Of a DNA stretch of 31,082 bases, positions 269 to 26,221 are shown piece after piece. Each line of letters opens with the position of its first letter. The first letter of the stretch is position 1. The stretch covers positions 77,025 through 108,106 of the forward strand of contig RQSC01000154.1 of the NCBI GenBank assembly GCA_013416795.1. The letters run 5' to 3'. Below the pieces are notes generated by a model. It ran no database searches and was not told the origin of the DNA. It saw only the letters and a program-made list of their open reading frames with translations. Position numbers and translations under genes: made by a program. The DNA comes from Prasinococcaceae sp. CCMP 1430 (taxonomy: Eukaryota; Plantae; Prasinodermophyta).

Positions 269-419
269 GTCGGATGCGCGCGCGCGCGGCACACACGCCC
301 AGTACACAGACGCACATGTGTGATGCGAACACAGCAATTTAGGCGAAATTTTATGAACTACGGATTTGATTGCATCACAAATATTACGTAAATTAGGTCA
401 AAACGGAGAAGAAAATGAC

Positions 420-540
420 GCACGCGCGCGCGCGCACGGACGAAAACGCGCGCGCGCGCGCACGCGCGCGCGCGCCGGCGCGCGCTTTTTTCCGACCCTC
501 AAACGCGCGCGTGCCGCGCGCGCGCCGCGCGCGCGCCCGC
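420..540. repeat. (CG)n-rich alternating purine-pyrimidine tracts (similar tract at 10162-10194)
   Basis: For example, 447-475 is an uninterrupted alternating CGCG/CACG tract. Confidence 0.85.
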
Positions 541-599
541 AGCGGGGTTCCAACGGAATCCGTCCCTTCCCCCAATTTGAGCGAATCCAATTTAAGAAT

Positions 600-2108
600 A
601 TGAGGTGGTTTGGAGTGGAAGGGGGGTTCCGCGTTTTCGCGCGGCGGGGGCGCGGCCGGGCGGCGCGCGGGCGGCGCGAGGCAAGGAGATCGTCAAGTTC
701 TTCAAGAAGCTCACGGGCGTGTACGGCATCGACCGCTGCGGCGGGGCCGAGCGGCAACAGCTTGGCGCACGCGCCGCTGGCCAAGGCGCCCACGGCGCTC
801 GGCGTCACCCACCCGCTCGCGTTGGCGACGCACATGCCGCCAGTCGGCGTCAGCGCGGCCCTCCCGGCGCTGGGCCAGGGCCTGGTGGCTGGGCTCGCGC
901 CCGCCAACCTGGCGTTCGCGGCGGCCGCCGCAGCGGCGGGCAACCAGACCGCGTACGCGGCGCTGGCCCAGCTCACCCAGCAGCTGCAGCAGCAGCAGCA
1001 GCAGACGGCGCTGGCACTGCAGCGGCAGCTGGAAATAGACGCCGCCGCCGAGCAGGCGCGGCGCATCGAGCACGCTCGCCTGGAGCAGGAGGGGCAGAAC
1101 TCGCCCCCGCAGCCGCGCTCGCCGCTGCGGAGCGCCTCCAACGGCACCATCGAGGCGGTGTCGCCGCAGATGTCGCGCGGCGCGCGCACCAACGCGCGTC
1201 GGCCGTCCGTCGAGCACATCTCGAGCCTGCCGCAGGGCCTGGCCAAGGTCCTCGGGACCGTGGGGACCAGCAACGCGCCCCGCGGGACGGGCACGCCGCC
1301 GCCGTCTGAGGGCAGGCCCGTGCTGACCAAGCCCACTGCCTGGCATGCAAAGGACGCGACGTCCGGGCGCGGCAAGAAGAGCAGGAGCGCGACCTCGGGC
1401 GCGTCGTCCAAAGCCGGCAAGAAGCCCAAGGGCGTCGCCAAGCCCGGGAGAGCGCGCGCGGGCGCCGACGCCCCCAAGCCGAAGGGCAAGCCCAGGGGCA
1501 TCCACGCTGCGCGCGCGAGGGAGCGCGAGCGCGTTGCGGCGCGCGAGGCGGCGGCTGCGCGAGGCGAGGCGGTGCCGCATGCGCCCACGCCGTGCTTCGA
1601 CGGCACCAATTGGGTGGGCACGCCCGAGGTCATCGAGAGGGAGATCGGCGACATGGACCAGAAGTCCCTGCAGGCGCGCTTCGAGGCTGTCTACGGCAAG
1701 GCCACCAACAGCAACAACAACGCCTGGCTCCGGCGCAAGCTGCTCGAGGCCTCGGGCCTGCGCGCGCCGCCCGCGCCTCGCTCCAAGGGGCGGCCCACCG
1801 TGCACTTCGCCGGCGCGAGCCTCGGCGTGCAAACGCTCATGCAGCTGGCAGGCCCCGGGTCGCGGTCCGCCAAGAGGAGGTCGACGTCCAAGCGCAAGCC
1901 CTCCCCTGGGGACGCGGTTCCTGCGCAGAGCAAGGGCGTCTCCAAGCCGAGGTCAACGGCCAGGCGCTCGCCCCTGAAAGCCCCGGCCCTGAATTCCGAG
2001 GCCGTGCCGGCGACCGCCGTGCCGGCGACCGCCGTGCCGGCGACCGCCATGCACGGCGCGCCGTTGCTCGCCCACGGACTGGCGGACGCCGCCATCGCCG
2101 CGGCCTGA
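600..2108 (+). CDS. Uncharacterised low-complexity protein (poly-Q, Lys-rich basic patches) with a small helical domain (EIGDMDQKSLQARFEAVYGKATNSNNNAWLRRKLLEA, 1641-1752); probably nuclear; start uncertain (ATG 600 or 834)
   Basis: Open frame to TGA 2106-2108 with strongly G/C-ending codons from about 750 onward. (CAG)n poly-Q near 979-1005. NLS-like KKPK/KRRSTSKRK segments. The ORF-track start at 366 is a TTG in non-coding-looking sequence. Confidence 0.75.
   Translation: MRWFGVEGGFRVFARRGRGRAARGRREARRSSSSSRSSRACTASTAAAGPSGNSLAHAPLAKAPTALGVTHPLALATHMPPVGVSAALPALGQGLVAGLAPANLAFAAAAAAAGNQTAYAALAQLTQQLQQQQQQTALALQRQLEIDAAAEQARRIEHARLEQEGQNSPPQPRSPLRSASNGTIEAVSPQMSRGARTNARRPSVEHISSLPQGLAKVLGTVGTSNAPRGTGTPPPSEGRPVLTKPTAWHAKDATSGRGKKSRSATSGASSKAGKKPKGVAKPGRARAGADAPKPKGKPRGIHAARARERERVAAREAAAARGEAVPHAPTPCFDGTNWVGTPEVIEREIGDMDQKSLQARFEAVYGKATNSNNNAWLRRKLLEASGLRAPPAPRSKGRPTVHFAGASLGVQTLMQLAGPGSRSAKRRSTSKRKPSPGDAVPAQSKGVSKPRSTARRSPLKAPALNSEAVPATAVPATAVPATAMHGAPLLAHGLADAAIAAA
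2001..2045 (+). repeat. Coding tandem repeat, 3 x 15 bp (AVPAT x3)
   Basis: GCCGTGCCGGCGACC repeated three times exactly. Confidence 0.95.
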
Positions 2109-2493
2109 AAAGGCGCGCACACGAAACAAGAAGCTCCTCGGGATTCGTGCCGGATGCCGGCACGCCCCGCGCGCTGAGAAACTCAAACACCGACACAGAC
2201 TGCTGACCCAGCGACAACAATGTATACTAGTTGGCAGCAGAGCGCGAAGGCCGTAGGCCCCGGGCCGAGCGCACGCGCTCCGAGTAGACGACGCGGTGCG
2301 CAAGCCATTGGGTCCCTCTGCACCCCCTCTCTGCACCCCTCTCCCTTTTTGGTAACTTATGATAGCTGTAGACGAACGTTATACGAATGACAGTGACCCC
2401 CCCGAGCCGCACATGCGCGCGCCCTTAGACGCGCGCGAAGCGCGCGAGCGGTCCGCGGAGCGCGCGCGCGCGCCGCCTCCGCCCGTCGCACCC

Positions 2494-4372
2494 TCAGTCG
2501 ACGCTTGATCCGAGGCCCACTACCGACATATTGAGCGGAGACGTGGCCCTCCTCCCCACGCCACTCGCCCCCACCCTCTGCGGCGAGGCCTCGACGAGGT
2601 CCGCGGTAGCGGTGGCCACCAGCTCCGCCGTGCTGAGGGCTGTGGGGCAGGTGGCGTGCCAATGGCGAAACGGGGGGGAGACGAGCATGCCGCCCTCTGT
2701 CAGCACAACATTCGGCGCCGGCACTCAGTGGGCCCGAACGCGCGTGAGCGGGACGCGCGAGCGGTCGTGCTCGCAAGCCCTCGCTCGCTGCGCGCGAGCG
2801 GTCGCGCGTGCACGCACCCTCGGTGACCTCCTCCTCGAGCTGCGCTATTTTGCTCGAGTGCGACACCCGCACCTCACGCTCGAGCGCCTCGAGGCGCGCC
2901 TCGTTGACCTGTGTACCACGCGCTACCTCAGCGAGCTGCCGCCGCATGGCCTCTGCGAGGCCCAACGGCTCGCGTCGCTCGCTTTCCACCATGGCTGCTG
3001 CTGCTCCGCACACCTTCTGCATCATGGCATGCAGCGACTGAACCTCAGAGCTCAGGCTCTCGATCGAGGCTTCGAAGGAGGACAACTTCGAGCGCAGCGA
3101 GCGCACCTCGGCGGACGAGGGTTCAGCGTCGCGCTCGATGCCCTCACAGCGCTGGCGCAATGAGTCGGCCGCCGCGCCTGCCGCGTCCGCCGACGACGCG
3201 GCGCTCGACGCGGCGGCCGCCGCCGCCACGCCGCTGTGCGCGGCCTCCGCCAGACGCGCCATGGCCTCGCCCAAGCTCAAGGGCTCGCTCGACTGTGCGG
3301 CCCCCTCTGAGCCGCCCCCCTCGCCGTCTCTTGTGCCCTCGCTGCGCTGCGGCGTGCCCGCGCCGACCTCAGCGACTGCTCGCACGGCTGCATGGCGCGC
3401 GGACGCGAGCTCGGCTTTCAGCTGTTCGACGCGTTTGGTGAGCACCTCGCAGCGTGCATCATCTCGGCGCGTTTGCATGGCCGCCGCGGCCGCCGCGGTG
3501 GCTGCGTCGCTCTCGAGCTGTCCCAGCGCGCTGTGTAACGCCGCAATGCGCTCCTCCTGCTGCGGAACTCGGCTGCTGAGGCCCTCGGAGAGCTCCGTCA
3601 GCTCGCGCACGCGCCGGCGCAGCTCCTCGTCGCCTTGTCGCTGCGTCGTCCGCTGCGCTTCGGCCGCGGCCGCGCGCAGCTGCTCGGCCTCGGCCTCTAG
3701 AGCCACAAGCTCGGATCGAATCGTTCGAGCGTCCTCGCGCGCAGCGGCTGCGCCGGCGGCCTCTCTGCTCGCGGCGGCCTCGGCGACCTTGGCGCGGTCC
3801 TCCATTGCCGCCAGGCGCTGGCGCGCGTCGTCACGCTCGGCCTCGGCGCGCGCGCGCGCAGCACCGGCATCTTGCGCCTCGGCTTGCCACGCATCGGCGG
3901 CCTCGCGCCACGCCTCCATCTGCGACGCCCAGCCCGCAACTTTTTTGCGCGACGCCGCGAGTTCCTGCGCGTACCGCTCTGCCGCCGCGGATGCTAGCGC
4001 ACCAGCACGGCGGTGGCCCTCGAGCTCAGCGCGGAGCGCCTCTGCCTCGGCGCGCGCGCGCGCGGCGTCGGCTGCCGCGGCTAGTGCCCCACCCTCGGAC
4101 TCGCCTGTGCTCACGAGAGGAGAGGGAGGGCTGGGTTGCTGGTGGGCCGCGCTAATCGGCTGTTGCGACTGTTGCGGGGTGATTGGCTGCTGCTGCTGCT
4201 GCAGCAGCGGCTGGGCCGGGGAGCATCGCGCCATCTGCCCCTGCTCCGTCCGCGCTGCGTGCCAAGCGTGCTGCGCGACGTGCGGCTGCGCGGCCACCTG
4301 GGCCGCCCGTGCCTTTCGCGAGGTGACGGCGGCGGTGGCATTGGTAGCAGCGGTGGCGGCGCCGGCTGCCAT
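2494..4372 (-). CDS. Long coiled-coil protein of unknown function; exons 4372-2818 and 2696-2494
   Basis: ATG at 4372. Ala/Glu/Arg heptad-rich translation. Phase-1 intron 2817-2697 (G|GTGCGT ... CTGACAG|AG) joins the long ORF to the 2494..2724 frame, which ends in TGA. Confidence 0.75.
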
Positions 4373-4957
4373 GCCGCGCAGCCGGCGGCGGGCGGCGCGG
4401 CGCGGCGCACGGGGCGGCGCTCCCGCCCTCGGCCCTCCCTCTTCCTCTCCCTCTCGTCGCGGCGCCGTTCGTCCCTCGCCCCTCCCCCCCTTTTCCCTCC
4501 ACCCCTCTCCCTCCTCCTCCTTCGCGCGGCTCACCCCCCGCGCGGCGGGCCGCTGTGGCCGCGGCCTCCGCGGCGCCCCGCCACCCCCCACCAGCGCCCG
4601 ATGCGGCCAATCGGCCGTTCCCCGAGCGATCGATGCGCTGCGGGCCGCCCGCGCCCCCGTTGTTATGCGCCCGCCCGTTTTATTTTTGGCGCCTTTTCCG
4701 GGTATTTTGTTTTTAAAAACACCGCACCGCGTGCGAGTGTGGTGACGAGCAGGTGCCCAACCAGCCGCGTCTCAGCCCAAATCCTGCTTTGATTCTCACT
4801 ATGCCGCGGTCTACCGACCCCGAGGCGATGGCCTCTGTTTTTTTTCTCATGGGGTTCCACATCCGCCTGGTGAGGGACACACGCTTCGGTCGGAGCGGGG
4901 GTGTCGATTGACCTGGCCCTTGTCAGTTGACGGCGTTATCCACAACGCCCCAAAAAT

Positions 4958-6743
4958 GTATGGTGGCAACGGGCCCCACTCATCGCAGCGAGCGAGCGAG
5001 CGAGCGCGGGGCGGCGGGGGAGAGCGAGAGCGGGCCGGGGCGGGCCGGGGGGGAGGCGGGCACAACGCGCGCCGCGCACCGCAACGCACGGNCCCGCTCC
5101 GCCGGAGCGCGCCGCGCCGTCTGCGCGCGACTGCCGCCGCCGATGACCGCCGCGCCGTCATCGGCGGCGAGCGATGGCTCACGCACGCGCCGCTGGCGTA
5201 CTTCGCGCTCGACAAGCTCGCGGCCAAAGGCCTCCGCGCGAACGCCGATGTGGGCTCGCCGAACGACTCGTCGCGGCCGCTGCTCAAGCTGGGCGACGTC
5301 GCCGTGGGCTCGTGGGCGTGCACCACCGGCGGATGGGAGAGCCCGTCGCCGCGGGCGTCGACCGAGGTCTTCTACGTGCTGAAGGGCGAGGGCTCTGTCG
5401 ACGATGAAGATGGCACCCGGCACCGCTTCGGGGCGGGGGACCTGGTCACGCTGCCGCGCGGCTGGAGTGGCCGCTGGGACGTGACGTCGACGGAGACGCT
5501 GCACAAGGTGTGGGTTACGCACGCCCACCCCGAGGTTAGCGGCGCCTCCACCGCCGCCGTCGTGACGACGCCGATCGCGCCGGCGCAGACCTCCGGCTGG
5601 TTCAAGCGCGACGTGGCGAGCGGTCCGTCGCACAAGGTGGCGTACAACGTGGGTGGCACGTCGGTCTCGGTGTGGAGTGCCCCGCCCGGCACGAAGCAGC
5701 AGCAAGCCGATCCCACGATCCAGGCGCTCCACGTGCTCGACGGCGTCGCCTTCGTCACCAACGCCGACGGCACCGCGTACCGCTGCGCCGCCGGCGACAC
5801 GCTCGTGCTGCCCGCGGGGTGGTCGGGCAGCTGGGACATTGTCGAGGAGCTGAAGGCGGTGTCGGTCGCCGTCGGCGATGGGACGGCGGCGCCGGGAATC
5901 TCCGCCAGCGCAGCCAGCACTTCGCAGTCCAAGGCCCGCCGGCCTATCGTCGGCGGCAACTGGAAGTGCAATCCCGAGAGCTTCGACGACCTGCCGGGGC
6001 TCATCGCCAACATCAATGCGTGCGACACGACGCACTGCGACGTGTACGTCTGCCCGTCGAACTTGCACGTGGGCGCGGTCTACAATTCGTTCACGAACGG
6101 CGCGCTCGTCGCGCCCCAGAACTGCAACTTCAAGGGCACTGGCGCCTTCACCGGCGAGATGGCGGTCGAGCAGATGAAGTCGATGGGGATGAAATGGGTG
6201 CTCATCGGCCACTCGGAGCGCCGCGGCGAGTTCGGCCTCCCCACGCCGGCTGAGTCGAACGCTCTGCTCGCGACGAAGCTCGAGCACATCCTCGACCAGG
6301 GGCTCAACTGCATCCTCGCGATCGGGGAGCCGCTGCCCGTGCGCGAGAAGGGCATCGACGCTGTCATGGAGAACCTGATTCCGCAGCTCGCCGAGGTGAA
6401 AGATCTGCTGAGCCCCGAGCGCGTCGTCATCGCGTACGAGCCGGTGTGGTCCATCGGCACCGGCGTCACGGCGACGCCGGCGCAGGCGCAGGAGACGCAC
6501 GCGGCCATCCGCCAGTGGATCCGCGAGAACGTCTCCGACAGCTGCGCCGACGGCATCCGCATCCAGTACGGCGGCTCGGCGAACGCTTCGAACGCGCCCG
6601 AGCTTGCGGCGTGCCCCGATGTCGACGGCTTCCTCGTTGGCGGCGCCAGTCTGAAGCCCGAGTTCAAGGACATTGTGGCGGCGCTGGTACCCGAGGAGAC
6701 CCGGCTGGCCGCGGAGCGCCAAAAACTAGAGAAGGCGATGTGA
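4958..6743 (+). CDS. TPI: Fusion of two EutQ/DUF861-like (Cupin_3) domains with a complete triosephosphate isomerase; possible plastid transit peptide; true start uncertain (ambiguous N at 5092)
   Basis: TPI motifs: IVGGNWK (catalytic Lys), IGHSERR (His), AYEPVWSIGTG (Glu, loop 6), YGGS, DGFLVGGASLKP at about 5937-6690. Cupin motifs: GSWACTTGGW...EVFYVLKGEG...GAGDLVTLPRGWSGRWDV (5298-5517) and SVWSAPPG...LHVLDG...AAGDTLVLPAGWSGSWDIVE (5661-5865). All in one uninterrupted frame. Confidence 0.92.
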
Positions 6744-6922
6744 GCGAGCGAGACAGAGACCCTGCCCGTGCCCCGTGCCGGCCGCCCGCCGACTCGACGC
6801 CTACTCCGCGAGCAGTTTTTGTTAAGATCCTAGGTTGTGTGTTTGCTTTGCCCCCAGACCCGCCGCACACACACACACACACACACACACACGAGTTCCC
6901 CCAGCCGACGGGTCGGTCCCCT

Positions 6923-6952
6923 TGAATTGAATTGAATTGAATCGAATCGAAT
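6923..6952. repeat. Pentamer array (TGAAT)4(CGAAT)2, preceded by a (CA)n microsatellite at about 6866-6891
   Basis: GAA at 6924, 6929, 6934, 6939, 6944 and 6949. Confidence 0.9.
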
Positions 6953-7157
6953 GCGCGAATCACGCGCGCACTTGGTATCATGCGTTCGAACAGAGCCTGA
7001 TCAGACGGACGGTCGCGTGTTCCGTTCCCCCAGCGGGCGCGGGCGCCGGCGGGGCGCGCCAAGCGGCACACCCCGCGCCGGCGCGAGGCGCGGCCGCCTG
7101 GCGGGCGAGCGGCGGGCCGCAACCGGCTCCGGCGCGGAACAGCGGGCGGCAGCGGCG

Positions 7158-13652: not shown

Positions 13653-13779
13653 CGGTGACGGCGCGCGCCGACTGGGAGGGGCGGCGCGAGCCGTGTGACA
13701 CCACGGACAATCAGACGTCGTATTCGTAATAAATAGAGTGGGGGACGACCTACTGTACTTACTCGCACATGCCAGCAGC

Positions 13780-15199
13780 CTACAGCTCATCGTGGTCGAA
13801 GTCCATGTCCTCCATGTCCTCGTCGAAGCCTCCGTCCTCCGCAGCGCCGTACACCGACGACACGATGGGGTTGGCGACGGCCTCGAGCTCCTTGAGTTTC
13901 TCGTTGATCTCGTCCGCCTCGGCGTCATCCCCGTTCTCCTCCAGCCACTCGAGCGTGTCGGCGACGGCGTCCTCGAGCGTCTCCTTGTCCGCCTCGTCCA
14001 GCTTGCCCCCCAACTTCTCCTCGTCCTCCACCTGGTTGCGCAGGTTGTAGGCGTACGTCTCGAGGCTGTTGCGCGCGTCGATCCGCTCCTTGACCTTCTT
14101 GTCCTCCTCGGCGAACTCCTCGGCCTCCTGGACCATGCGATCGATCTCCTCCTGGGAGAGGCGACCCTTCTCGTTCGTGATCACGATCTTCTCCTTGGAG
14201 CCGGTGCCCTTGTCCTCGGCACCGACGTTGAGAATGCCGTTCGCGTCGATCTCGAAGGTCACCTCAATCTGCGGCACGCCGCGCGGCGCCGGGGGGATGT
14301 TGGTCAGGTCGAACTTGCCCAGAAGGTGGCAGTCCTTGGTCATGGTGCGCTCGCCCTCGAACACCTGGATCTGGACGGTCTGCTGGTTGTCCTGGTACGT
14401 CGTGAACGTCTGCGACTTCTTGGTCGGGATCACCGTGTTCCTGGGGATGAGCTTGGTCATCACGCCGCCGACGGTCTCGATGCCCTGGGTGAGCGGGGCC
14501 ACGTCCAGCAGCAGAATGTCCTTGGCGTCGCCGTCCTCGCCGCTCAGAATGCCGCCCTGCACGGCCGCGCCGAAGGCGACGGCCTCGTCGGGGTTGACGC
14601 CCTTGTTGGACTCCTTGCCGTCGAAGTAGTCCTTGATGAGCTGCTGGACCTTGGGGATGCGCGTGGAGCCGCCCACCAGCACGATCTCGTCGACCTCGTC
14701 CTTGGAGAACGCGGCGTCCTCCATGGCCTTCTTGACGGGGCCCATGGTCTTCTTGAACAGGTCGGCGTTGAGCTCCTCGAAGCGCGCGCGCGTGAGCGGC
14801 TCGGAGAGGTCGACGCCGTCGTAGAGCGACTCGATCTCCACGCGCACCTGGTGCTGCGACGAGAGCGAGCGCTTGGCGCGCTCGCACTCGCGGCGGAGCT
14901 TCTGGAGGGCGCGCTTGTCGCCGGAGATGTCCTTGGAGAACTTCTTCTTGATGAGCTTGATGAAGTACTCCATCACGCGCTGGTCGAAGTCCTCGCCGCC
15001 CAGGTGGGTGTCGCCGTTGGTCGAGATCACCTCGAACACGCCGTTGTCGATGGTCAGGATGGACACGTCGAAGGTGCCGCCGCCGAGGTCGAAGACGAGG
15101 ATGTTCTTCTCGCCGCCCTTCTTGTCGAGGCCGTAGGCGATGGCCGCGGCGGTGGGCTCGTTGATGATGCGCGCCACGTTCATGCCGGCGATGGTGCCC

Positions 15200-15237
<38 letters not shown>

Positions 15238-15947
15238 GGCCGGGACGGTCACCACGGCGGACGAGACGTCCTTGCCGAGGTACGCCTCCGCGGTCTCCTT
15301 CATCTTGGTCAGGATCATGGCCGAGATCTCCTCCGGCGAGAAGCTCTTGGTCTTGCCGCCCGCGATCTCAACCGACACCATGGGCTTGCCGTCCTTGGAC
15401 GTGATCTTGTAAGGGACGAGCTTGGCGTCGCGCTGCACCTCCTTGTCGGCGTAGTTGCGGCCGATGAGGCGTTTCACGTCGAAGATGGTGCGGGTGGGGT
15501 TGACGGTGGCCTGGTTCTTGGCGGCGTCGCCGATCAGGCGCTCGTCGTCCGTGAAGGCCACGTACGACGGCGTGATGCGGTTGCCCTGGTCGTTGGCGAT
15601 GATGTCGACCTTGCCGTTCTTGTAGACGCCCACGCACGAGTACGTGGTGCCGAGGTCGATTCCAATCACCGTGCCCAGGTCCTCGTCGGCGCGCGCCAGC
15701 GAGCCGGCACACACCGCCGCCACGGCGGCGAACGCGAGGAAGCCTGGTGATGGTGGTGGTGTTTGAGGCGCGTGGGGAGCGGGCCGGAGGGAGCTCTCTG
15801 TGTCAGCGGGCGCTGCCTGGAACGCGCGCAACACATCACACCTGCCCTAACTTCCGCCACAGCTTGCAGGGGAGCACCTGCCCGGTGGCGCACGCGCACG
15901 CGGCTCGTCCTCCCGGAAAGCGCGGTCACACGCGCTGCCTTCGGCAT
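13780..15947 (-). CDS. BIP: ER luminal Hsp70 chaperone BiP; main exon 15743-13780 plus a short signal-peptide exon (best model 15947-15932)
   Basis: [50 protein letters not shown] and C-terminal HDEL. The phase-1 intron model gives [27 protein letters not shown], a typical signal peptide. The exact first exon is uncertain. Confidence 0.97.
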
Positions 15948-16985: not shown

Positions 16986-19900
16986 TCAGCTTGCGCCGGC
17001 CAACTCCCTCCCACCCGAGTCGCCCACTCCCGCTGCTGCGCCCATGGCGACGGCGACGGCGTTGGCGACCGCCGCGAGGCCCTGGGCGGGCGAGAGCAGG
17101 GCCTCTACTTGGCGCACAACGTCCAGGCTGAGCTCCTCCGTCTCGGACATCTGCTCAATCCCGGCCGCCTCGGCTCCCCCACCCTCATCACCGGCGGCCT
17201 CGTCCTCGTCCTCGCCTACGGCCGATGACTTATCATTGGCGAGGGCCGCCTTTTGAGGGAAGAGCGTCATGACGGCGCGTTGGAGCACCTCGAGCTGCCG
17301 GTCGCGCGGCGGGAGCGGCTCGCCTGCGGCCTGCGCGGCCTCGGCCGCGAGGCGCAGGTCGGTGGCGGCACGCCTCGCTTCGCTCAACGCTCGCGCTTTG
17401 ACGCACGTGCTGCCGCGCAGCACGCGCGCCTCGCTGAGCTTGCCGTCGCAATCGCCGTCCCCAGGCGCCACGATGACGTACACGGCGCGCAGCGTGCCTC
17501 CGGCGCCCTCAAGCCACTGCACGCACACGAGGTTGTCCGCCAGCAGCTCCGCCGCGGCACCGGCGTCAGCGAAGCTCGGCAGCGGTACCTCCGCGAAGCA
17601 ACACTGGCTGGCGTATGGCTCGCACGACTTGATGAGGAAAGAGTGCAGCGCGACGGCCTTCCTCCGCGCGGAGCCGTCGAGCCCCGTGACAATTCCCCCG
17701 GCCTTGAGCACAGCCCGTCCGCCCGCGCGCAGCAGCAGCCTAGGCAGCTGCGAGTCGCTCGCGGCGGCAGGTGCCGGGCCGCTCGAGGCCGCCCTTAGGG
17801 CGGCATACTCCTCAGACTCGCGCGCCTCGGCGAGCGCCCACGAAGGAGCCTGCGAGATCGCAGAGGTCCCCATCCCGGCCGCAATCGCATCGCTGGCGCC
17901 GAGAAAGCTACGGCCCATCGCCACAGCCCGCTCCGCGGCCTTCAGGCAGCTCGCAGCGCGGCCGACAGCGTCCATCCACGAATCGCCGGTGCTCGTTGCC
18001 GGCAGATTCCCACGCTCGCCATCGCACAGAAGCGCAAGGGCGAGCTGGACGAGCGCCGAGCGTAAGAGGTCACGGTCGTTGCCGCCGTCGCTCACGGTGA
18101 TACGGACCGCCGCCGAGAGGTGGCGCGCCGCGCCCTTGGCGTCGCCGACACCAGCTTCGCCGCTCAGCTGGAGCTTGGCCGCGCCGAGCGCTGCGTACGC
18201 AGACGCCGCGAGGGCGGGGTCCACCTGCGCGGGGTACGTGCGCGCGAGCGCGCACGCGCGTTCTCCAGCAGCGCACGCCACCTCAGCGAAGCCACCGCCG
18301 CCGGTGCCGCCCGAGGCGCTCGCGTTGACGAGCAGGCACGTCTTCGCGTGAAGCACGTGCGCGGTGGCGAGCATTTCGACTCCCGGGACGCACGCGCGGC
18401 GCAGCACGAGGTGCGTGTCCGAGTCGCGCAGGGCAAGCCCTTCGCAGAGCTCCTCCATTTCCTCGACTGCGCGGCGCGCGGCGGCTGTGGCGGCGTGTGC
18501 GTCGCCCAGATCGACGTGCATCGCGGCCATCCGTAGCAGGCAGCGCGTACGAGGGGCGCCAGGGTTGCCCATGCGGTCGTGCGCGGCTCGCACGTTGCGT
18601 AGAAGCTCGATGGCCGCTTCGATGTCGCCGTCGGCCAGCGCGAGATGCGCCTGGATCTCGGTGATTGCGGCAGCACTGCGATCGGCGCGCGCTTTCGAGG
18701 CGGCCACCAGCGCGCGTTCGCACGCCTCGCGTGCTTCGACGCGCCGTCCGAGCTGCTCGAGTGACTCGCACAGCAGCCGGTCGCAGGCGAGCTCGAACGC
18801 CGTCCCAAGAGACTGCCCGGCGCTTTGGGGGGTCGCCGAGAGTGCCAGGCGCGCCTCGCGTGCGCACTGCAGTGCCGCAGGCGCATCGAGCTGCGCCCGG
18901 TGCACGTGTGACAGCACCAACGCACCCCACGCCTTGACCTCCCACGCGTAGGAGCCCTCCTGCTCAAGATCACTCTGGCCCGTCGTCGGGCGTTCGGTGG
19001 CACCCTCAGCCGCGGCGTGGCGCGAGAGTGTCTCGTCCGCCTCGCTCTTCAGCGCGTTCACGAGCTGCTTGGCGGCGTCGAACAGTTGGTTCTGCTCGGG
19101 AGAGACCACCAAGGCCGGCGCATCCGCCTGCAGCCCGTCCTCGGAGGCGGGATCAGTCACGGCCCAGGTGCGCGCGGTCGTGCCGGCGACCAGAAGCCAG
19201 CGCGCGCGCGCGAACTGGATGTTGGCGGTGACGCGCGCACCGTACGCTTCGCGCACGGCCACGGGGATCTCAGCCTCGGCCACGAACTTGGTTATGGCGG
19301 CGTTGTGTGGATGGTCTGCGCCGCAGTCATCCCGGTAGGGCGAGGGCCGCCCCAGGCCCGTGGTGGCAGGCAATGCGGCAATGCCCCGGCTGCCCGGCAT
19401 GGGGCCGCGCCACGGCACATCATCGCCATGGACGAGCGCGACGAGCACGGCGGAGGCTGACGCGATCCGCCCCAGCAGGCAAAGAGCGCGCACGCGCATG
19501 GCGCGCGCGGAGGCTGTGCCACCCGCCTCGCGGGCGCGGAAGCGGAACAGGTGCTCGAGCATCGACAGCACGGGCAGCGCCGCCAGCGCGTCGCTGGCGG
19601 GCTCGCCCTGAGCGATGTGTTCCGCGCTGATCTCGTCCCCGGATTTGAGCAGCACCTCAGCAGTCACGCGAAGCGCATGAATGAGTTTGCTCGCACAGCA
19701 CAGGTACGGGTCATCCAGCACGTCAACGTTCTCCCAGAGCTCGACAGGCACGTAGTCAGCGAAGTCGATCAGGCGCTGTGGGTGCACGATCGAGCACTCG
19801 AACGTGGCGGCCACGAGCGCGGCCGCGAACTCGCAGCACCGCCGCTTGCCTTCGATGTCGTTCGCGTACGTTGACTCGCCAACCTTGACGAGGATGCAGA

Positions 19901-22900
19901 CGCTCATCAGGCAACCGTGTAGACCGAGCGCCCTTATGGGCGATGCGCCCAGCGCACGCAGTGTCGCGCGCCAGTCCTTCGTCGCGTGATAAGAACCGAA
20001 GAGCGCGTCAATGGCGTCGCTCCAGGCCACTGCGGCTGACGCGTGGTCGCCCAGGGACGCATGCACGTCGCCCAATTCGTGCAGAGCCTGCACGTGCAGC
20101 AGGCGCGCGTCCTTGCCAGTTCGCAGCCGCAACATTTCGACGGCCTTGCCGTAGGCGGCCACAGCGGCATGCACATGGCCACCGCCGTGGCCACGAGCGG
20201 ACCCGCGGCTGAGTGGGCGGGCGGTTTGCGCGGCGCCGTGGCCCTCGGCGGCGCCGCCGCTGCCATCCGTGTCCTTCTCTGCGGCACAGTGCTGCGCCCA
20301 CAACGCGCGGCAATCGTCCAGCGCCGAGACGGCGAGGTTTTTGTCGCGGCGCAGCTGCTCCGTGCGCTTGCGCACGCGGTTTCTTGCTGCTGAGTCGCCG
20401 CTCGCCTCGGCGGCCTCCATCGCTAAAGGGAGGCTCTTGTCGGCGTACGCGTCGTCCGTGAGAGCATTAAAGCTTTGCGCCACGCTGATGCAGCCGTGCC
20501 ACATGCCCGCGTCGAGGATGCGGCGCAGGCACTGCATGGTGAACGCGCACGCCCACTTCATGTGGCCGGCAGCGAAGTGATCCTTGAACCAAGGCTCTGT
20601 GGGCGGTGCGTCTGACGCCGCGCTGAACGCGGTGGCCGGGCGCCCATCTGCGCCGTGTACTTTGTGCGAGCGCAGGCCCTCCATCTGTGCGAGCAGTGAC
20701 TCTGACGCCACCTCGAGTGCGCGACCGAGCTTGCGCGCCTCGTGAGGCGCCGCGCCATCCGCGAAGAGTTCGCGCAACACATCGGTGAGCGCACGTGCCG
20801 CCCACGCCGCCTCCGAGCTCACGAGGATATGTGTGCGGTAAGCAAGCACGCACGTTCGGCACATACGCAGCGCCAGCTGCAACTCCGGGCTGGGTTCTTT
20901 GGACTTCAAGTCGGCCTCGTCGCCGCCAGTGGCAGCGTCGTCGCCTCCCTCGCTGATCTTGGCAGCTTCGGCGTCGGACACGAGCATGAAGGACGGCCCG
21001 CCGTTGACTTCGGCCGCCTCGAGGCACAATTCCATCTCACATGAGGAACGTAGCAGCTCCACGCGCACTCGCCATGTGTTGAAGTGTTTCATGCGCTCTA
21101 GGCGCGCAAACATCTCGCGACGCCTGCGCAAGCGCGCACGCAGGCCGCGCTGGATGATAACAGCTGCTGCCTCCTGCTGCGTTGCTTCATCCTTCGCAAC
21201 TGCAGCGGCGTCAGCATCCATTGCAACGCCGGGCCCACCAGTGCCATCACCATCGCCCTCGACGGCCTCGTGAGCCGCTGCAGCCGCCTCGGCATCGGCG
21301 GCCTCCCGAGCGGCGACCAGCTCGGCGTACTTCTGTGCGCGAGCAGCCTCGTCCGCCTCAGCCGCAGCGGCAGCCGTATCGTTGATTTGCTTCTCGTCGG
21401 CGACGACCATGCCAACCGTCTCCTCGATCCATCCTTGGACCTCTGTGAGCCGACCCTCTCGTACGCCCTGCGCGACGACGCTGTGCAGTGCCTCGAGGGT
21501 GCGAGGGCACAGCGGCGCCGCCAAGAGCACACCGCGCGCAGCCTCCGCGCCTGCTTTCGTGAGCGTGGCATTGATCTTTGCGATGAGTGCGTCGCCGCTC
21601 GCCTCATCAGGTGTGGGCGCGTCTGGGCTCTCAGTTGCAGTGGGTAGCACCGCGACGTACTCGTTCAGCGCCTTGACGGTGTCCACGGCCGTGTGCTGGC
21701 CGTCCTCGACGCCATCCGGAGGCTTTCTGAAGAGCGACGACTTGGTGATGGACGCATAAGATGCTACTGCGTCGGCTTCGCCAGCGGTACGGTAGATCTC
21801 GATGAGGTCGTACGCGGCTGCGGCCGCCGATGCGGCGACAGTCGAATGGCCGCGCTTGGACTGGATGCACCGCTGCAGAGCAATGTTCGCGCGGCCGAGG
21901 GGCTTCGCCAGCCAATTCGCCCGGTGGCGCAGGGTGCGCAGCGGAGCAAGCGTATCGTGTACGCGCAGCCCAGCCTCTTCGATGAGACGCTCGTCGCCCA
22001 CAGCTGCCGCCACCTCGAGAGCCATCAAGCGCAACTTGGCGCTGCGCAGCAGCCCCATATGCGCTTTGAAAGGCGGGAGGCGCACATTGGTGCTCGTGCC
22101 TGGGGTCCGGCCATCGCAGCCAGTCAGAGCCGCACTCTGCAGTAGCACATGCACCAGAGAGCGCAGCGTGGCAGCCGGGGCACTGGTTAGTGCCGCCGCG
22201 TTGATCTCAACCTCATCGGTGGGGTGCGCGTCCCACGGCGCGCTGAGGTCGTGCGATACCAGGAACTTTTCTGTCACCTGCGCGAAGGCGTCACGCGCGA
22301 TTGTAGTGGAGCCAACACGCGCAGCTGCGAGGCCAATCGACGACCACAGTGCCAGCGTGGGCAGAGGCAGGAGCGCGGGGACACCAACAGTACTCGCGCC
22401 GATGCCATCGCCAACCAGGCGCTTCGACTTGTCGTACGCGGCCACCGCAAACATGTACATCTCATTGGGACGCAGGCCATGCACCCGCACGGCGCTGTCC
22501 ACCGGTACGAGCTCGCCACACCCAGCGAGGCCGGAGTCGTTCAGGCTGACGCCGAGACCGCTGCCGAGCGGCTTGGCATACACGGCGTAGTACGTCACCT
22601 CCCCCTGCGACTTGAGGTTGAAGGCAGGCGCGCCAACCACGACGGCACCGGCTGTGCGCGCGACAACACGCGGCGCAGCAGGTACGCGGCCGCGGGGTGT
22701 GGTCTTCTGTGCTGCCGCTGTCCGAATCGCCTCCTCCGCATCGCTGGCCTCCCGCGCTTTAGCGCATGCCTGCGAGAGCAGCTGACCCGCGCGCCCCGCA
22801 TCGTGGGGGAAAAGGCTCGCCATTTCCACCAGCAGCATCGCGTGCTCGTATGGGTTTTTGTTCACCACGTTTGCAAGGCGGCGCTCCTCCTTCGCGGGGT

Positions 22901-25271
22901 GCTCTGGCACTCGCCGCGCCTCGGAGAGCCGCTTAGCGTTCGCGGTCATCTGCAGCCCGAGCAAACCTCCATAAGCCTTGGCCTGCTCTTCTTGCTTGGA
23001 CACCTCACGCTCCACGCGCATCCGGCGCGTGCGGGCTTTGGCCAGGTCACTCCCCAGGCTCCCGCGAAGGGCGCCGCGGAAGCGAAGCGTAGTCAGGTCC
23101 GCCTGAAGACCAGCGAGCGCCGACTCGTTGCTCTCGGTGTCGTTAGCCGCCGCAAAAGCTGCGCCACCGCTGCCGCCGGTCATTGCTGAGCGCTCCGCCT
23201 CCTCGCCGCGGACTTGAATGACGTGGTCAAGCGCCTGGATGGCCACCTCTTCGCATCGGCGGTGGTCCTTCAGGCCATCGAGAAGCACGCACAACGCTGC
23301 GGCCACACGAGCTCGCGCGACAGCATCATCAGCGCGCACTGCTTGCAAAACCTCGTGGAGGGTGCCTAGGGCGCTCACCGCTGCCAGCGCGTCCCCTGCA
23401 GCGGATTCAGACCCATCGCCAGGGGCGGCGGTGGCAGTGTTTGGCGGGGGGGGCACCGCGCTCAAGGCGGCACCCGCGAGCTCCCACACACGCATGGCCA
23501 GATCCGCCGCGAGGTCCGGAGCGCGGCCGAGCACCTCTCTCTCTGCAGCGCTCGATTCTAGCACCGCAAGCGCTGTGGCCACGGCATCGTCGAGCTGCTT
23601 TCCCCCTCCGCATGTCCAAGGCATGGAACCCACACCCTCGGCGGGCGCAGCCGCGGCCACGTCGAGCGCGCGCAGTGCGCGAACCATGTGCAGCTCGTGC
23701 TCAGCCTGTGCGGACGTCATCTGGCCCTTGGGGTCGGCATCGCATGCCAGAGCTGCTGCTGCGCGCCGTTCGCTCAACGCCAAAGCGCGCTCCAGCAGCT
23801 CGTGGCGCTCGTACTGGTACGCACATCGCACGAAGCCAACGAGCAGGTCGAGCGGCACGCTGACCGCACACGCCGACGCCGCCTCGGCTGCTGCGGCCAT
23901 ATCCGCGGCAGCAGCTTCAGCGGCTTCGGTCGTCTTGGCGTTGAGCTCTTCTTCGGCGGTCAGCGCTGCCTCGGATGTCTCCCCCTCCGCACGTGCAGCG
24001 GCGGCGCTCTCTTTGACTCCGGCAGCGGCGGCAGCGGTGGCCGCAGCTCGCGCACTTTCGCCCTCATCCAGCTTGGCGACCATGTCCTGAAGTGTCGGCT
24101 CGATGAGCGACCACATGGCGTCAAACAGTGCGACTTGCGCTGGGACGGCCTCGCTGTGGTTCCCGGGGCGCTCGACGTTGCCACTCGCGCGCAGCGCCTC
24201 CACAGCGGCCTGCAGCTTGCTTTCGATGTTGTTGAAGGCGCCGAGCGCTGCTTCTGCGTCGAACGTGGCGTCAGAGCCGTCCGCCAGCGCCGCGTCATAC
24301 TTCAGCACGAGCATGTTGATGGCCATCAGAGCACGCGCGTACGCAGCCTCGCTCTCAACGGGCAGCGCGATAGGCTCGAGCTTCTCGAGCGCATAGAGCT
24401 GCTCCATCTCGCCGAGGCCACGCCTGGCGAAGGCAAGAGCGAGTGATCGCTTGCCTGCGTCGGCGTACGCCTCGCACGCGAGCGCGATGAGCTCGCAGCG
24501 CCACGCAAAGTGACGGGGCAAGCACAATGGCAGCAATTTCTCAAATGCGAGCGAGGCGAAGAGCAGGCTCTCGAGCGCGAGCGCGCCCAGGCCAGCCGCC
24601 ATGAGCGGCGCCGCGAGCGTCGCCATGTGCACCGACCCATCGTGCACGAGCCAATACAATTCGTCTTCGGGGAGCGACAGCTCGATACCGCGCCGCACCA
24701 GCGCCATCGCCGCGAGGAGGCGCTTTGGGGTTTCTTGCAGCGCGCATGTGCCGTCGGCCTCGACCGCCAGCGCGTGCTCGCAGCGCGCCACGCCGAATGA
24801 TGCTTGCACCTCGAGTGCAACGAGCTCGGCACGCGTGGTTGCGCCAGCCGCCCCCGCGCCGAGCAGGTCCATATCGAGGCAGCGGCGATAGCACTCCGTC
24901 AGTGCCAGCCGATGCTCGCCGCAGCGGATGAGCCCGCTGCCCAGCGAGAGTAACGCAGCGGCCGCCGCCGCGACCGGCAGGCGCGCAACATGATGTGCGA
25001 CGCAATCGGCGAGCTTGCCTCGCAGCTGCCACAGGCGCTCGCACGCAACCCGCACGCGCTCGTCCTCGCTCTGGGTGGGGACTGGAAGCGTCATCGTCGC
25101 CGCCACGGCGGCGGCGGCAGCTGATTCCACCGAATCTGCCGCGCGTGTGCCCGCGTCCCGCTCGCCCCACCCGCCACCTTTCTCGCGCTTGTGCGCTGCG
25201 AGCGCGCGCATCGCCTTGCCGGCCTCTTGGTCGAACGCGCGGCGCCACGCGGCGGACGCGCCGGCCGCCAT
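16986..25271 (-). CDS. CFAP54: Cilia- and flagella-associated protein 54 (central-pair C1d projection), about 2760 aa, apparently one long exon; may have an extra 3' exon
   Basis: The N-terminal region LLSLGSGLIRCGEHRLALTECYRRC...LPEDELYWLVHDGSVH...LLFAS...LLPL...FAWRCEL..LACEAY matches my recollection of the CFAP54_N family. There is also an Fn3-like YAVYAK...GLRPNEMYMFAVAAYD segment. ATG 25271 is the first plausible start. Confidence 0.85.
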   Translation of the reverse strand: MAAGASAAWRRAFDQEAGKAMRALAAHKREKGGGWGERDAGTRAADSVESAAAAAVAATMTLPVPTQSEDERVRVACERLWQLRGKLADCVAHHVARLPVAAAAAALLSLGSGLIRCGEHRLALTECYRRCLDMDLLGAGAAGATTRAELVALEVQASFGVARCEHALAVEADGTCALQETPKRLLAAMALVRRGIELSLPEDELYWLVHDGSVHMATLAAPLMAAGLGALALESLLFASLAFEKLLPLCLPRHFAWRCELIALACEAYADAGKRSLALAFARRGLGEMEQLYALEKLEPIALPVESEAAYARALMAINMLVLKYDAALADGSDATFDAEAALGAFNNIESKLQAAVEALRASGNVERPGNHSEAVPAQVALFDAMWSLIEPTLQDMVAKLDEGESARAAATAAAAAGVKESAAAARAEGETSEAALTAEEELNAKTTEAAEAAAADMAAAAEAASACAVSVPLDLLVGFVRCAYQYERHELLERALALSERRAAAALACDADPKGQMTSAQAEHELHMVRALRALDVAAAAPAEGVGSMPWTCGGGKQLDDAVATALAVLESSAAEREVLGRAPDLAADLAMRVWELAGAALSAVPPPPNTATAAPGDGSESAAGDALAAVSALGTLHEVLQAVRADDAVARARVAAALCVLLDGLKDHRRCEEVAIQALDHVIQVRGEEAERSAMTGGSGGAAFAAANDTESNESALAGLQADLTTLRFRGALRGSLGSDLAKARTRRMRVEREVSKQEEQAKAYGGLLGLQMTANAKRLSEARRVPEHPAKEERRLANVVNKNPYEHAMLLVEMASLFPHDAGRAGQLLSQACAKAREASDAEEAIRTAAAQKTTPRGRVPAAPRVVARTAGAVVVGAPAFNLKSQGEVTYYAVYAKPLGSGLGVSLNDSGLAGCGELVPVDSAVRVHGLRPNEMYMFAVAAYDKSKRLVGDGIGASTVGVPALLPLPTLALWSSIGLAAARVGSTTIARDAFAQVTEKFLVSHDLSAPWDAHPTDEVEINAAALTSAPAATLRSLVHVLLQSAALTGCDGRTPGTSTNVRLPPFKAHMGLLRSAKLRLMALEVAAAVGDERLIEEAGLRVHDTLAPLRTLRHRANWLAKPLGRANIALQRCIQSKRGHSTVAASAAAAAYDLIEIYRTAGEADAVASYASITKSSLFRKPPDGVEDGQHTAVDTVKALNEYVAVLPTATESPDAPTPDEASGDALIAKINATLTKAGAEAARGVLLAAPLCPRTLEALHSVVAQGVREGRLTEVQGWIEETVGMVVADEKQINDTAAAAAEADEAARAQKYAELVAAREAADAEAAAAAHEAVEGDGDGTGGPGVAMDADAAAVAKDEATQQEAAAVIIQRGLRARLRRRREMFARLERMKHFNTWRVRVELLRSSCEMELCLEAAEVNGGPSFMLVSDAEAAKISEGGDDAATGGDEADLKSKEPSPELQLALRMCRTCVLAYRTHILVSSEAAWAARALTDVLRELFADGAAPHEARKLGRALEVASESLLAQMEGLRSHKVHGADGRPATAFSAASDAPPTEPWFKDHFAAGHMKWACAFTMQCLRRILDAGMWHGCISVAQSFNALTDDAYADKSLPLAMEAAEASGDSAARNRVRKRTEQLRRDKNLAVSALDDCRALWAQHCAAEKDTDGSGGAAEGHGAAQTARPLSRGSARGHGGGHVHAAVAAYGKAVEMLRLRTGKDARLLHVQALHELGDVHASLGDHASAAVAWSDAIDALFGSYHATKDWRATLRALGASPIRALGLHGCLMSVCILVKVGESTYANDIEGKRRCCEFAAALVAATFECSIVHPQRLIDFADYVPVELWENVDVLDDPYLCCASKLIHALRVTAEVLLKSGDEISAEHIAQGEPASDALAALPVLSMLEHLFRFRAREAGGTASARAMRVRALCLLGRIASASAVLVALVHGDDVPWRGPMPGSRGIAALPATTGLGRPSPYRDDCGADHPHNAAITKFVAEAEIPVAVREAYGARVTANIQFARARWLLVAGTTARTWAVTDPASEDGLQADAPALVVSPEQNQLFDAAKQLVNALKSEADETLSRHAAAEGATERPTTGQSDLEQEGSYAWEVKAWGALVLSHVHRAQLDAPAALQCAREARLALSATPQSAGQSLGTAFELACDRLLCESLEQLGRRVEAREACERALVAASKARADRSAAAITEIQAHLALADGDIEAAIELLRNVRAAHDRMGNPGAPRTRCLLRMAAMHVDLGDAHAATAAARRAVEEMEELCEGLALRDSDTHLVLRRACVPGVEMLATAHVLHAKTCLLVNASASGGTGGGGFAEVACAAGERACALARTYPAQVDPALAASAYAALGAAKLQLSGEAGVGDAKGAARHLSAAVRITVSDGGNDRDLLRSALVQLALALLCDGERGNLPATSTGDSWMDAVGRAASCLKAAERAVAMGRSFLGASDAIAAGMGTSAISQAPSWALAEARESEEYAALRAASSGPAPAAASDSQLPRLLLRAGGRAVLKAGGIVTGLDGSARRKAVALHSFLIKSCEPYASQCCFAEVPLPSFADAGAAAELLADNLVCVQWLEGAGGTLRAVYVIVAPGDGDCDGKLSEARVLRGSTCVKARALSEARRAATDLRLAAEAAQAAGEPLPPRDRQLEVLQRAVMTLFPQKAALANDKSSAVGEDEDEAAGDEGGGAEAAGIEQMSETEELSLDVVRQVEALLSPAQGLAAVANAVAVAMGAAAGVGDSGGRELAGAS

Positions 25272-26221
25272 CGCGCTGGCCGCCGGCTGAGCGGAACGGC
25301 TGAGCGGGACGGCGGCGGTCGGGGAGCGTCGCCACTCGATCACGCGCACCGGTCTCAGCCCGGAGGAGGAAAAGCAGGAGGGGTGGCATGCGACGAGATA
25401 TGTATGGCTGCGGGCAGTGGCGGAGGCGTGCGGACGCCGTCGTGGAGCAGTTGTCCACCATGAAGGCGACGCCGCGCGCGTGGCGCAGCCCCGCGCGCCG
25501 CGCCGACACCAAACCGCGCCGTACAAATGCCGCGCCTTCCCGATGAAGCATCCAATCCGTATCAAAATACGAGTTATTCTTCGCATGAACGCGGATATTT
25601 TCCCCTAACGTCGCTCAATTGGGGACCTTCCGTGAAATTCCCGCGATGGGGTGCCGGGCCGGGCGGTCGTGTGGCGCCCGCGTGGCCCCGCGGAACATCC
25701 CCGTTTTCCCGCCTTTTTCCGAAACCCCACCCTGCGCTGCGCCGGCAAACCCGGTCAAACTACCATCAAATGAAACATAGTATAGACCCTATGTTGGAGC
25801 GCACCGCAACAGAATATTCTCGCGGGAGCTGGCGCGCGCACGTGTGCGCCTGCTGGACGGGCTCGGCCGCCGGGGTTGGGGCCACGCGCGGGCGCACGAG
25901 GTGCTCCCCGGCTGGCGCCGGCTCGGAGGGGCGTGGGCGTGCCCCGCCGCGGATGGTCTTTGTGGCGCCCACCGCCGGGGACCGGCCTGCCTCCATGCCT
26001 GACTACTGATCGGCTGACTGAGTGCTGACTGACTGAGTGACGCCGTGCGGTGGCGGGAGGTCTCGTCGGCTTCCCATGAATCGCCGGGCAAAGCCCTGCC
26101 CCTCCGCCGCGCCACCGGTCCGCGCCGCGTGTCACGTGTGGCCGGCGCAGACCCAGCCGGGCGCGCGCTCGCCTCGTGGCGGTTAGCAGCGTGGCCCCAG
26201 CAAGCGCCTAGCAGGCGCGCG

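Follow-up and report, generated by a model that had tools for sequence, protein, structure and literature searches.

In the marine alga Prasinococcaceae sp. CCMP 1430, two cupin barrels of the DUF861/Cupin_3 family and an apparently complete triosephosphate isomerase (TPI) are encoded in one open reading frame (ORF), and comparison with relatives in public transcriptomes and metagenomes suggests that this two-barrel protein (bicupin) has been joined to TPI at least three times independently. The fusion gene occupies positions 5094–6740 of the plus strand of a 31,082-nucleotide stretch of contig RQSC01000154.1 (GenBank assembly GCA_013416795.1), referred to throughout as the window. Fusion in both orientations, to TPIs of different ancestry, would constitute a Rosetta-stone signal that the bicupin and TPI share a common metabolite pool, and other algae keep the bicupin as a separate protein too, often with a plastid-type leader. 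TPI, which interconverts dihydroxyacetone phosphate (DHAP) and glyceraldehyde 3-phosphate (GAP), is among the best-studied of all enzymes, and a large share of the carbon fixed in the ocean depends on marine algae through their Calvin cycle and glycolysis. To our knowledge, most DUF861/Cupin_3 members are without an assigned function, with solved structures available since 2003 (1rc6). The bicupin may point to a part of carbon metabolism in algal plastids that annotation has missed, and the function of DUF861 cupins becomes a directly testable question.

A preliminary description of the locus, made from the sequence alone, knew of no described cupin–TPI fusion, suggested that the fusion might bear on DUF861 function and offered as possible roles for the cupins metabolite sensing, regulation of plastid TPI, handling of a by-product such as methylglyoxal, and scaffolding of Calvin-cycle partners. 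Full-text literature searches on cupin–TPI fusion, DUF861, Cupin_3 and algal plastid or diatom TPI likewise found no published description, and the fusion is not mentioned in a 2025 glycolysis review, an ochrophyte plastid proteome paper or a Phaeodactylum carbohydrate model. In public transcriptomes and metagenomes, however, the architecture is widespread, in both orders and on several TPI paralogues, under automatic names such as 'triosephosphate isomerase' or 'ureidoglycine aminohydrolase cupin domain-containing protein'. The relevance to DUF861 has gained in force, since the fusion appears to recur independently. Within this family, which is widespread though undescribed, the window gene is nothing unusual, and its interest lies in repeated fusion as a functional clue.

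The 549-residue product encoded in the window matches Pfam TIM (PF00121) over amino acids 284–530 and profile positions 1–244 of 245 (E = 2.1e-66; 224.4 bits against a cutoff of 20.1) and Cupin_3 (PF05899) in two stretches (E = 8.7e-26; 89.9 bits against a gathering score of 23.5). Cupins are the only non-TPI domains detected by Pfam, neither GAPDH nor PGK being among the matches. The TPI part appears catalytically complete and of eukaryote type: it scores 177.5 bits against NCBIfam TIGR00419 (tim; cutoff 130.6), aligns end to end with solved TPIs (best PDB chain 8v2x, E = 5e-66, active-site motifs covered) and finds its other best PDB matches among eukaryotic chains (1hti, 1r2r, one described as cytosolic and one as chloroplastic). 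The catalytic residues Asn289, Lys291, His373, Glu375 and Glu449 are all there, as are PVWSIGTG, the lid formed by loop 6, and two phosphate-binding loops, YGGS and GGASL. A full-length AlphaFold2 model reaches a predicted local distance difference test score (pLDDT) of 88 with a predicted template-modelling score (pTM) of 0.54, falls below pLDDT 50 in the linker at amino acids 263–278 and contains no confidently predicted bicupin–TPI interface. Because the high pLDDT is paired with this pTM and a disordered linker, the model predicts two independent folded modules on a flexible tether of about 16 residues. Linker length and sequence differ among homologues. One uninterrupted cupin–cupin–TPI frame, two DUF861 barrels, a flexible Ala/Ser linker at about 5874–5936 and an intact TPI were all part of the preliminary description, and each is upheld by these domain matches, the catalytic residues and the models, the predicted disorder covering nucleotides 5880–5927.

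The same cupin–cupin–TPI order recurs in many ocean metagenome proteins and in a transcript-derived protein of the pelagophyte MMETSP1329 (P0004/P0132), the closest named relative at 69–70% identity; there, one mRNA covers all three domains, which the preliminary description had singled out as worth confirming. The reversed order, TPI–cupin–cupin, is found in the diatom Corethron pennatum (P0395), in the raphidophyte Chattonella subsalsa (P0080), in the dinoflagellate Polarella glacialis and an accompanying MMETSP transcript (P0147, P0148), and as an unbroken genomic ORF (L082) in NCBI assembly GCA_977009685.1. Stand-alone bicupins of 270–390 amino acids, several of them with signal-peptide-type leaders, are on record from haptophytes, cryptophytes, diatoms and others: Emiliania huxleyi (EMIHUDRAFT_204045), Hemiselmis andersenii, Pinguiococcus pyrenoidosus, the diatom Amphiprora, the chlorarachniophyte Partenskyella, a record labelled Tetraselmis and a scaffold of a compact, probably green picoeukaryote; MMETSP labels are open to contamination, and the last few of these assignments are tentative. 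Among 199 proteins (198 fetched and that of the window), 28 are cupin-first, 23 TPI-first and 43 stand-alone bicupins, or 12, 10 and 41, respectively, after removal of near-duplicates at 92% identity.

Separate phylogenies of the two parts, an analysis that the preliminary description had proposed, reject a single fusion origin. In a TPI tree of 88 sequences, the fused TPIs of diatoms and raphidophytes stand very far from the rest in a clade of their own (support 99, branch length 2.7), those of dinoflagellates lie inside another clade together with enolase–TPI fusions, and the cupin-first TPIs fall into two further subclades among stand-alone TPIs. Approximately unbiased (AU) tests rejected one clade for all cupin-fused TPIs (log-likelihood difference 240, p = 1.4e-5), one clade for cupin-first and dinoflagellate TPIs (p = 5e-63) and one clade for cupin-first TPIs alone (p = 0.0026). 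Of the 12 cupin-first proteins in the bicupin tree, 11 group in one clade (Shimodaira–Hasegawa-like approximate likelihood ratio test, 96%), and the diatom-type and dinoflagellate-type fusions each have a clade of their own, with stand-alone bicupins adjoining. As the cupin-first TPIs are not one clade though their bicupins are, this conflict points to TPI replacement, fission or further fusions. The best PDB matches of the diatom-type fused TPI are 1b9b, 1btm/2btm and 3uwu, which we take to be bacterial TPI chains; the diatom/raphidophyte fusion would then be built on a bacterial-type TPI. The dinoflagellate fusion is on a third TPI lineage. Because the trees and AU tests reject a single origin, the minimum reading would be at least three independent fusions of one bicupin family to TPI, plus further fission or replacement. 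A separate observation concerns P0010, a cupin-first metagenome protein of 532 amino acids whose bicupin groups with diatom-side bicupins, apart from the other cupin-first proteins, and whose N terminus is without a signal peptide; this protein may represent either a cytosolic form or a fusion event of its own, the fourth.

In a first search of algal sets, the other partners of TPI were GAPDH, PGK, enolase and aldolase, with one LHC–TIM and one TLC–TIM protein as exceptions, and a lactonase-like SGL partner turned up in a diatom search. Ten longer bicupin proteins had no other Pfam partner, the only further match being to DPC2 and below threshold (21 bits against 70). These ten were chosen by a profile search based on alignment A1, which was used solely for this purpose: because A1 included fusion proteins at full length, its profile (560 positions) took in TPI columns, and its 19,881, 11,201 and 1,783 matches, mostly ordinary TPIs, proved useless for charting bicupin distribution.

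Two other modules were seen on diatom TPIs. In many diatoms, among them Chaetoceros tenuissimus, Seminavis robusta and Cylindrotheca, the same bacterial-type plastid TPI carries a C-terminal SGL domain (SMP-30/gluconolactonase/LRE-like, PF08450) in place of the bicupin (among P0434, P0477, P0472, P0409 and others), a fusion that is apparently also undescribed. The Thalassiosirales TPI proteins P0409, P0412 (Conticribra weissflogii) and P0416 (Thalassiosira sp.) have a Pfam DPC4_N motif (diatom pyrenoid component 4 N-terminal motif) before TPI, at 31–33 bits where the cutoff is 27. In T. pseudonana, DPC4 belongs to the pyrenoid matrix and is described as having no predictable function (bioRxiv 10.1101/2023.10.26.564148); the motif hints at a possible link between the plastid TPI of diatoms and the pyrenoid.

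An AlphaFold2 model of the bicupin, built from a 51-sequence alignment, shows two jelly-roll barrels packed as one unit (pLDDT 93, pTM 0.89). Among PDB entries, Foldseek matches it best to three DUF861 bicupins, 1sef, 1sfn (DR1152) and 1rc6 (YlbA), with 4e2q close, at template-modelling (TM) scores of 0.66–0.70 and 10–14% identity. VIA-align ranks 3myx (PSPTO_0244, DUF861; Z = 20.6) and 1sfn (Z = 19.7) highest, with many metallo-bicupins tied just beneath the DUF861 matches (Z = 17–19). By sequence, the nearest solved chains are the single-barrel DUF861 proteins 3bcw (E = 4e-9) and TM1112 (E = 8e-5), both uncharacterised. Named families offered little guidance: the EutQ acetate kinase family PF06249 gave no match at E ≤ 0.1 in the Pfam scan, in which only the general 'EutQ-like' Cupin_3 model matched; the single barrels and the bacterial homologues matched no named NCBIfam family; and the ESM Atlas returned only generic 'EutQ-like cupin' clusters, bacterial and fungal.

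Conservation within the bicupin, taken from alignments A1 and A2 of 51–61 sequences and numbered on the 549-residue product, is concentrated in barrel 1, where most of the invariant positions fall. Lys45, Asp52, Trp74, Cys76, Thr90, Glu91, Arg127, Trp128 and His145 are invariant, and Arg48, Arg87, Asp129 and Lys138 nearly so (98%). The richness of this set in Arg and Lys suggests that the ligand may be an anionic small molecule. Mapped by the motifs G-X5-H-X-H-X3,4-E-X6-G and G-X5-P-X-G-X2-H rather than by superposition, the canonical metal-ligand positions of barrel 1 are occupied by Ser85, Arg87, Glu91 and Gly126, none of them His, and by the same motif-based mapping His is absent from the equivalent positions of barrel 2. 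With no His at the canonical ligand positions of either barrel, the protein is unlikely to perform the metal-dependent chemistry familiar from other cupins.

The barrel-1 signature extends to bacteria. When 185,579 genomes of bacteria and archaea were scanned, the motif PK[GHQ][WH]xGRWD led to single-barrel proteins of 113–125 amino acids at about 80 loci in Alphaproteobacteria, Actinomycetota and Chloroflexota, 37–51% identical to barrel 1 with its N-terminal lead included. Arg48, Asp52, Cys76, Arg87, Glu91, Arg127, Asp129 and Lys138 are common to these homologues at 97–100%, and most other conserved residues are shared as well, the exceptions being Lys45, Thr90 and His145, which are not shared with 68 bacterial single-domain homologues. 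Barrel 2 keeps the signature in part: across the family its Arg127 equivalent is His in 28%, the Cys stands at 63% and the Lys at 53%, and in the window protein the Glu equivalent reads as Gln in the sequence. Because the signature is kept in the bacterial homologues and only partly in barrel 2, the working barrel would seem to be barrel 1, with barrel 2 as its degenerate partner. Gene neighbours of the bacterial homologues are mixed, with acyl-CoA dehydrogenase genes in Actinomycetota, and with aldehyde dehydrogenase, PrpD, EamA and ABC transporter genes among the others. At one Rhodobacteraceae locus (L019), the single-barrel gene lies directly upstream of genes for a PlsC-type acyltransferase and a CdsA-like cytidylyltransferase of glycerolipid synthesis. 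Loci L012 and L021 have ORFs of matching length in both places, whereas L038 and L040 have a counterpart of the first neighbour only, in each case matched by ORF length alone; all five are Roseovarius/Rhodobacteraceae loci from closely related genomes, and the arrangement is correspondingly weak evidence.

The start of the gene had to be recovered from a second source. The frame runs without a stop from window position 4908 to its TGA, in a window of about 70% G+C, and the preliminary description set the start at 5092; this position is the only N in the window. By blastn, a TARA Oceans metagenome scaffold (L001) matches window 733–5091 over its positions 348–4696 (98.4% identity) and window 5093–6999 over 4996–6891 (98.8%), and where the window has the N it holds 299 extra bases of very high G+C, among them the earliest ATG in frame (L001:4892). 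The N therefore stands for an assembly gap, in which about 299 bp, the true ATG and approximately the first 35 codons are hidden, and the in-frame low-complexity sequence at 4908–5091, upstream of it, is outside the fusion protein. P0001, the 584-residue protein encoded on L001, is the closest database protein (99% identical) and, among the homologues inspected, the only other one with the C-terminal tail PEETRLAAERQKLEKAM. Its leader MAPLALSTPSVA joins LRGSLRRD..., the whole leader being about 52 residues long (MAPLALSTPSVALRGSLRRD...). The Arg/Ala-rich, transit-like stretch of the preliminary description does belong to a presequence, of which it is merely the tail, the beginning being lost in the gap. 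The gap is upstream of all three domains, and the cupin–linker–TPI junction is unbroken in the window, in the independent TARA scaffold and in transcripts of relatives (Table 1). Further single-N positions of the assembly may also conceal missing exons. In the 3′ flank, at window 6866–6952, a (CA)n microsatellite gives way to repeats of the pentamers GAATT/GAATC.

Table 1. Parts of the fusion gene and its assembly gap, in window coordinates (aa, amino acids of the 549-residue product)
Feature	Position	Strand	Evidence
Single-N assembly gap	5092..5092		L001 against window, blastn; ATG at L001:4892; P0001 of 584 aa
Presequence tail, Arg/Ala-rich, PLRRSAPRRLRATAAA	5094..5141	+	Extends the P0001 leader; pLDDT <50 at aa 1–13
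Conserved N-terminal lead and cupin barrel 1 (DUF861/Cupin_3)	5142..5543	+	Cupin_3 at aa 66–133; pLDDT 91–98
Inter-barrel variable loop	5544..5627	+	pLDDT 55–74, <50 at aa 166–170; poorly conserved in alignment A1
Cupin barrel 2 (DUF861/Cupin_3), apparently degenerate copy	5628..5879	+	Second Cupin_3 stretch; pLDDT 91–97
Flexible Ala/Ser/Thr linker, GTAAPGISASAASTSQSK	5880..5927	+	pLDDT <50 at aa 263–278
TPI domain, eukaryote type, catalytically intact by residues	5934..6689	+	Pfam TIM; TIGR00419; 8v2x alignment
Short C-terminal helical tail, PEETRLAAERQKLEKAM, and TGA stop	6690..6743	+	Predicted helix at aa 534–548; stop at 6741–6743

The leaders of relatives point to the plastid, being of the bipartite or tripartite plastid type by sequence. 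The pattern of ochrophyte plastid-targeted proteins, a signal peptide with an aromatic residue or Leu at +1 (ASAFAP-type) and then a transit peptide, is plain in these relatives, typically at A|L or A|F junctions: cupin-first relatives have a hydrophobic signal peptide and then A|LQLP-type junctions, and diatom-type fusions have the classical junctions G|FTF, A|FVV and A|FTN. Dinoflagellate fusions bear a long leader with a second hydrophobic segment, presumably of the class-I plastid type. The leader recovered from L001 has a possible VA|L junction.

Taken together, we favour, with slightly better than even confidence, a reading in which a real, intron-free nuclear gene of a pelagophyte-like marine alga encodes an organelle-targeted, likely plastid, two-module protein, in which a metal-free DUF861 bicupin, a flexible linker and a complete TPI follow one another and the bicupin acts as an autonomous binding or catalytic module. 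TPI would dimerise as usual and interconvert DHAP and GAP, each subunit carrying one freely tethered bicupin. Barrel 1 would provide a pocket free of metal, where Arg87 and Glu91 occupy canonical metal-ligand positions and the conserved Cys76, Arg127 and Lys138 lie nearby, and which could bind and possibly convert a small anionic metabolite of the triose-phosphate pool, and barrel 2 would serve as its degenerate structural partner. We infer that bicupin and TPI act on the same metabolite pool, in which case fusion would give co-localisation and fixed stoichiometry to two cooperating activities, as in TPI–GAPDH or PGK–TPI, rather than allosteric control. An autonomous module is favoured over an allosteric sensor because lineages differ in where the bicupin is attached and in which TPI paralogue carries it, because no interface is predicted, because stand-alone forms exist in many algae and in bacteria, and because almost all other TPI partners in the first search of the algal sets are pathway enzymes.

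Several points weigh against this reading. The clades submitted to AU tests were named after the tree had been seen, and all trees were quick searches. Most homologues are unlabelled metagenome proteins, and the taxon assignments depend on a few labelled sequences. Bacterial gene neighbourhoods are heterogeneous, with no tpiA among those inspected, so they support no coherent functional inference. The leader recovered from L001 is weakly hydrophobic, with a maximum Kyte–Doolittle 12-residue window of 1.29 against 1.7–3.0 in most relatives; because it is so much less hydrophobic, the plastid destination of the window protein, derived mainly from those relatives, is uncertain. Finally, the non-His ligand positions make mere binding as plausible as catalysis.

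A bolder proposal, to which we give tentative credence at most, is that the bicupin is an unrecognised plastid triose-phosphate enzyme, for example a metal-free isomerase or lyase, or a damage-control activity on a TPI substrate, inhibitor or by-product, that red-lineage algae have repeatedly welded to TPI. If true, the fusions would provide a first foothold on the function of a DUF861 subfamily that reaches into bacteria.

A first alternative is regulation, with the bicupin as a sensor of a plastid metabolite (2-phosphoglycolate, phosphoenolpyruvate or 3-phosphoglycerate) that modulates the attached TPI. As a class, DUF861 domains are small barrels that bind ligands and lack residues for holding a metal, inhibition of TPI by 2-phosphoglycolate is known (PMC2173943) and fusion would guarantee 1:1 stoichiometry. 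We nevertheless consider it unlikely: AlphaFold2 gives no confident interface, with a pTM of 0.54 and a disordered linker, the bicupin sits at the N or the C terminus of unrelated TPI paralogues according to lineage, and it is a separate protein in many algae, with bacterial homologues that have no TPI link. It is a shade more doubtful that the bicupin is a docking or scaffold module bringing TPI to a Calvin-cycle or pyrenoid-associated assembly. The DPC4_N motif on the plastid TPI of Thalassiosirales indicates that algal plastid TPIs do gain localisation modules, and a degenerate barrel 2 could present an interaction surface; yet the strongest conservation is a signature of the buried-pocket type, to which the canonical ligand positions in barrel 1 belong, and this signature is common to bacterial proteins of 115 residues that have no such partners. 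Neutral fusion without function, or an assembly or gene-model artefact, is most improbable, despite the gap at 5092 and the proneness of TPI to fusion in these algae, given the position of that gap, the continuous junction in window, TARA scaffold and relatives' transcripts, at least three apparently independent joinings of bicupin to TPI, and no other Pfam partner among the ten longer bicupin proteins.

Other genes were noted in the window. An Hsp70 gene lies on the minus strand within 13738–15834 (E = 1.7e-261), and the ORF antisense to it matches Pfam NAD-GH (E = 8e-140), a family that we take to be a recognised artefact of Hsp70 antisense frames. At 16989–25586 (−) is an ORF of 2,866 amino acids with a CFAP54 N-terminal domain, a ciliary gene, adjoined at 26045–29131 (+) by a full-length gene for CCDC39, also ciliary. 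The organism is flagellated, as these two ciliary genes side by side indicate, and its genes are largely intron-free.

Among the closest known systems is the TPI–GAPDH fusion of stramenopiles, reportedly the subject of Liaud et al. in 2000. Like the window protein, it combines TPI with a second module in one ORF behind an organellar presequence, occurs in the same broad algal group and is read as co-localising consecutive activities; it differs in that its partner is GAPDH and its destination mitochondrial, whereas here a bicupin stands N-terminal to TPI and the leaders of relatives are of the plastid type. Such TPI–GAPDH fusions are established in stramenopiles (Nakayama et al. 2012, PMC3527533). 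The PGK–TPI protein of the Thermotoga type (NCBIfam NF010569) likewise has a flexible junction, and the window TPI matches its TPI half (E = 8e-58), but no PGK domain is present and the NF010569 score is 196 bits against a cutoff of 883.

For the bicupin, 3myx and 1sfn share the two-barrel fold (Z = 20.6 and 19.7; root mean squared deviation of 3.3–3.9 over 209–218 residues) and the Cupin_3 family, yet they are only 11–14% identical, bacterial and stand-alone, with no function known. (S)-Ureidoglycine aminohydrolase/YlbA (4e2q, 1rc6) is another DUF861-type bicupin of similar fold (TM 0.68–0.70, Z = 18.3–18.9). It is a Mn-dependent enzyme with His and Glu ligands in the barrel, unlike the window protein, both of whose barrels are without His at the canonical positions and which gave no equivalog match (NF008373, 14.8 bits against 445; NF040771, 14 bits against 350). 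The single-domain DUF861 proteins (TM1112, solved as 1lkn and 1o5u; 3bcw; and the bacterial homologues of 113–125 amino acids) resemble the bicupin in sequence, the homologues sharing the Arg/Asp/Cys/Arg/Glu/Arg/Asp/Lys signature of barrel 1; they differ in having one barrel, none of those inspected is linked to TPI and all are uncharacterised. Also close are the TPI–cupin–cupin proteins of Corethron, Chattonella and Polarella, present as database entries only, which carry the same bicupin family on TPI behind plastid-type leaders, but in the opposite order and with a bacterial-type or dinoflagellate-clade TPI. Because the order is opposite and the TPI paralogues differ, the Corethron/Chattonella and Polarella forms would represent independent fusions of the same two partners.

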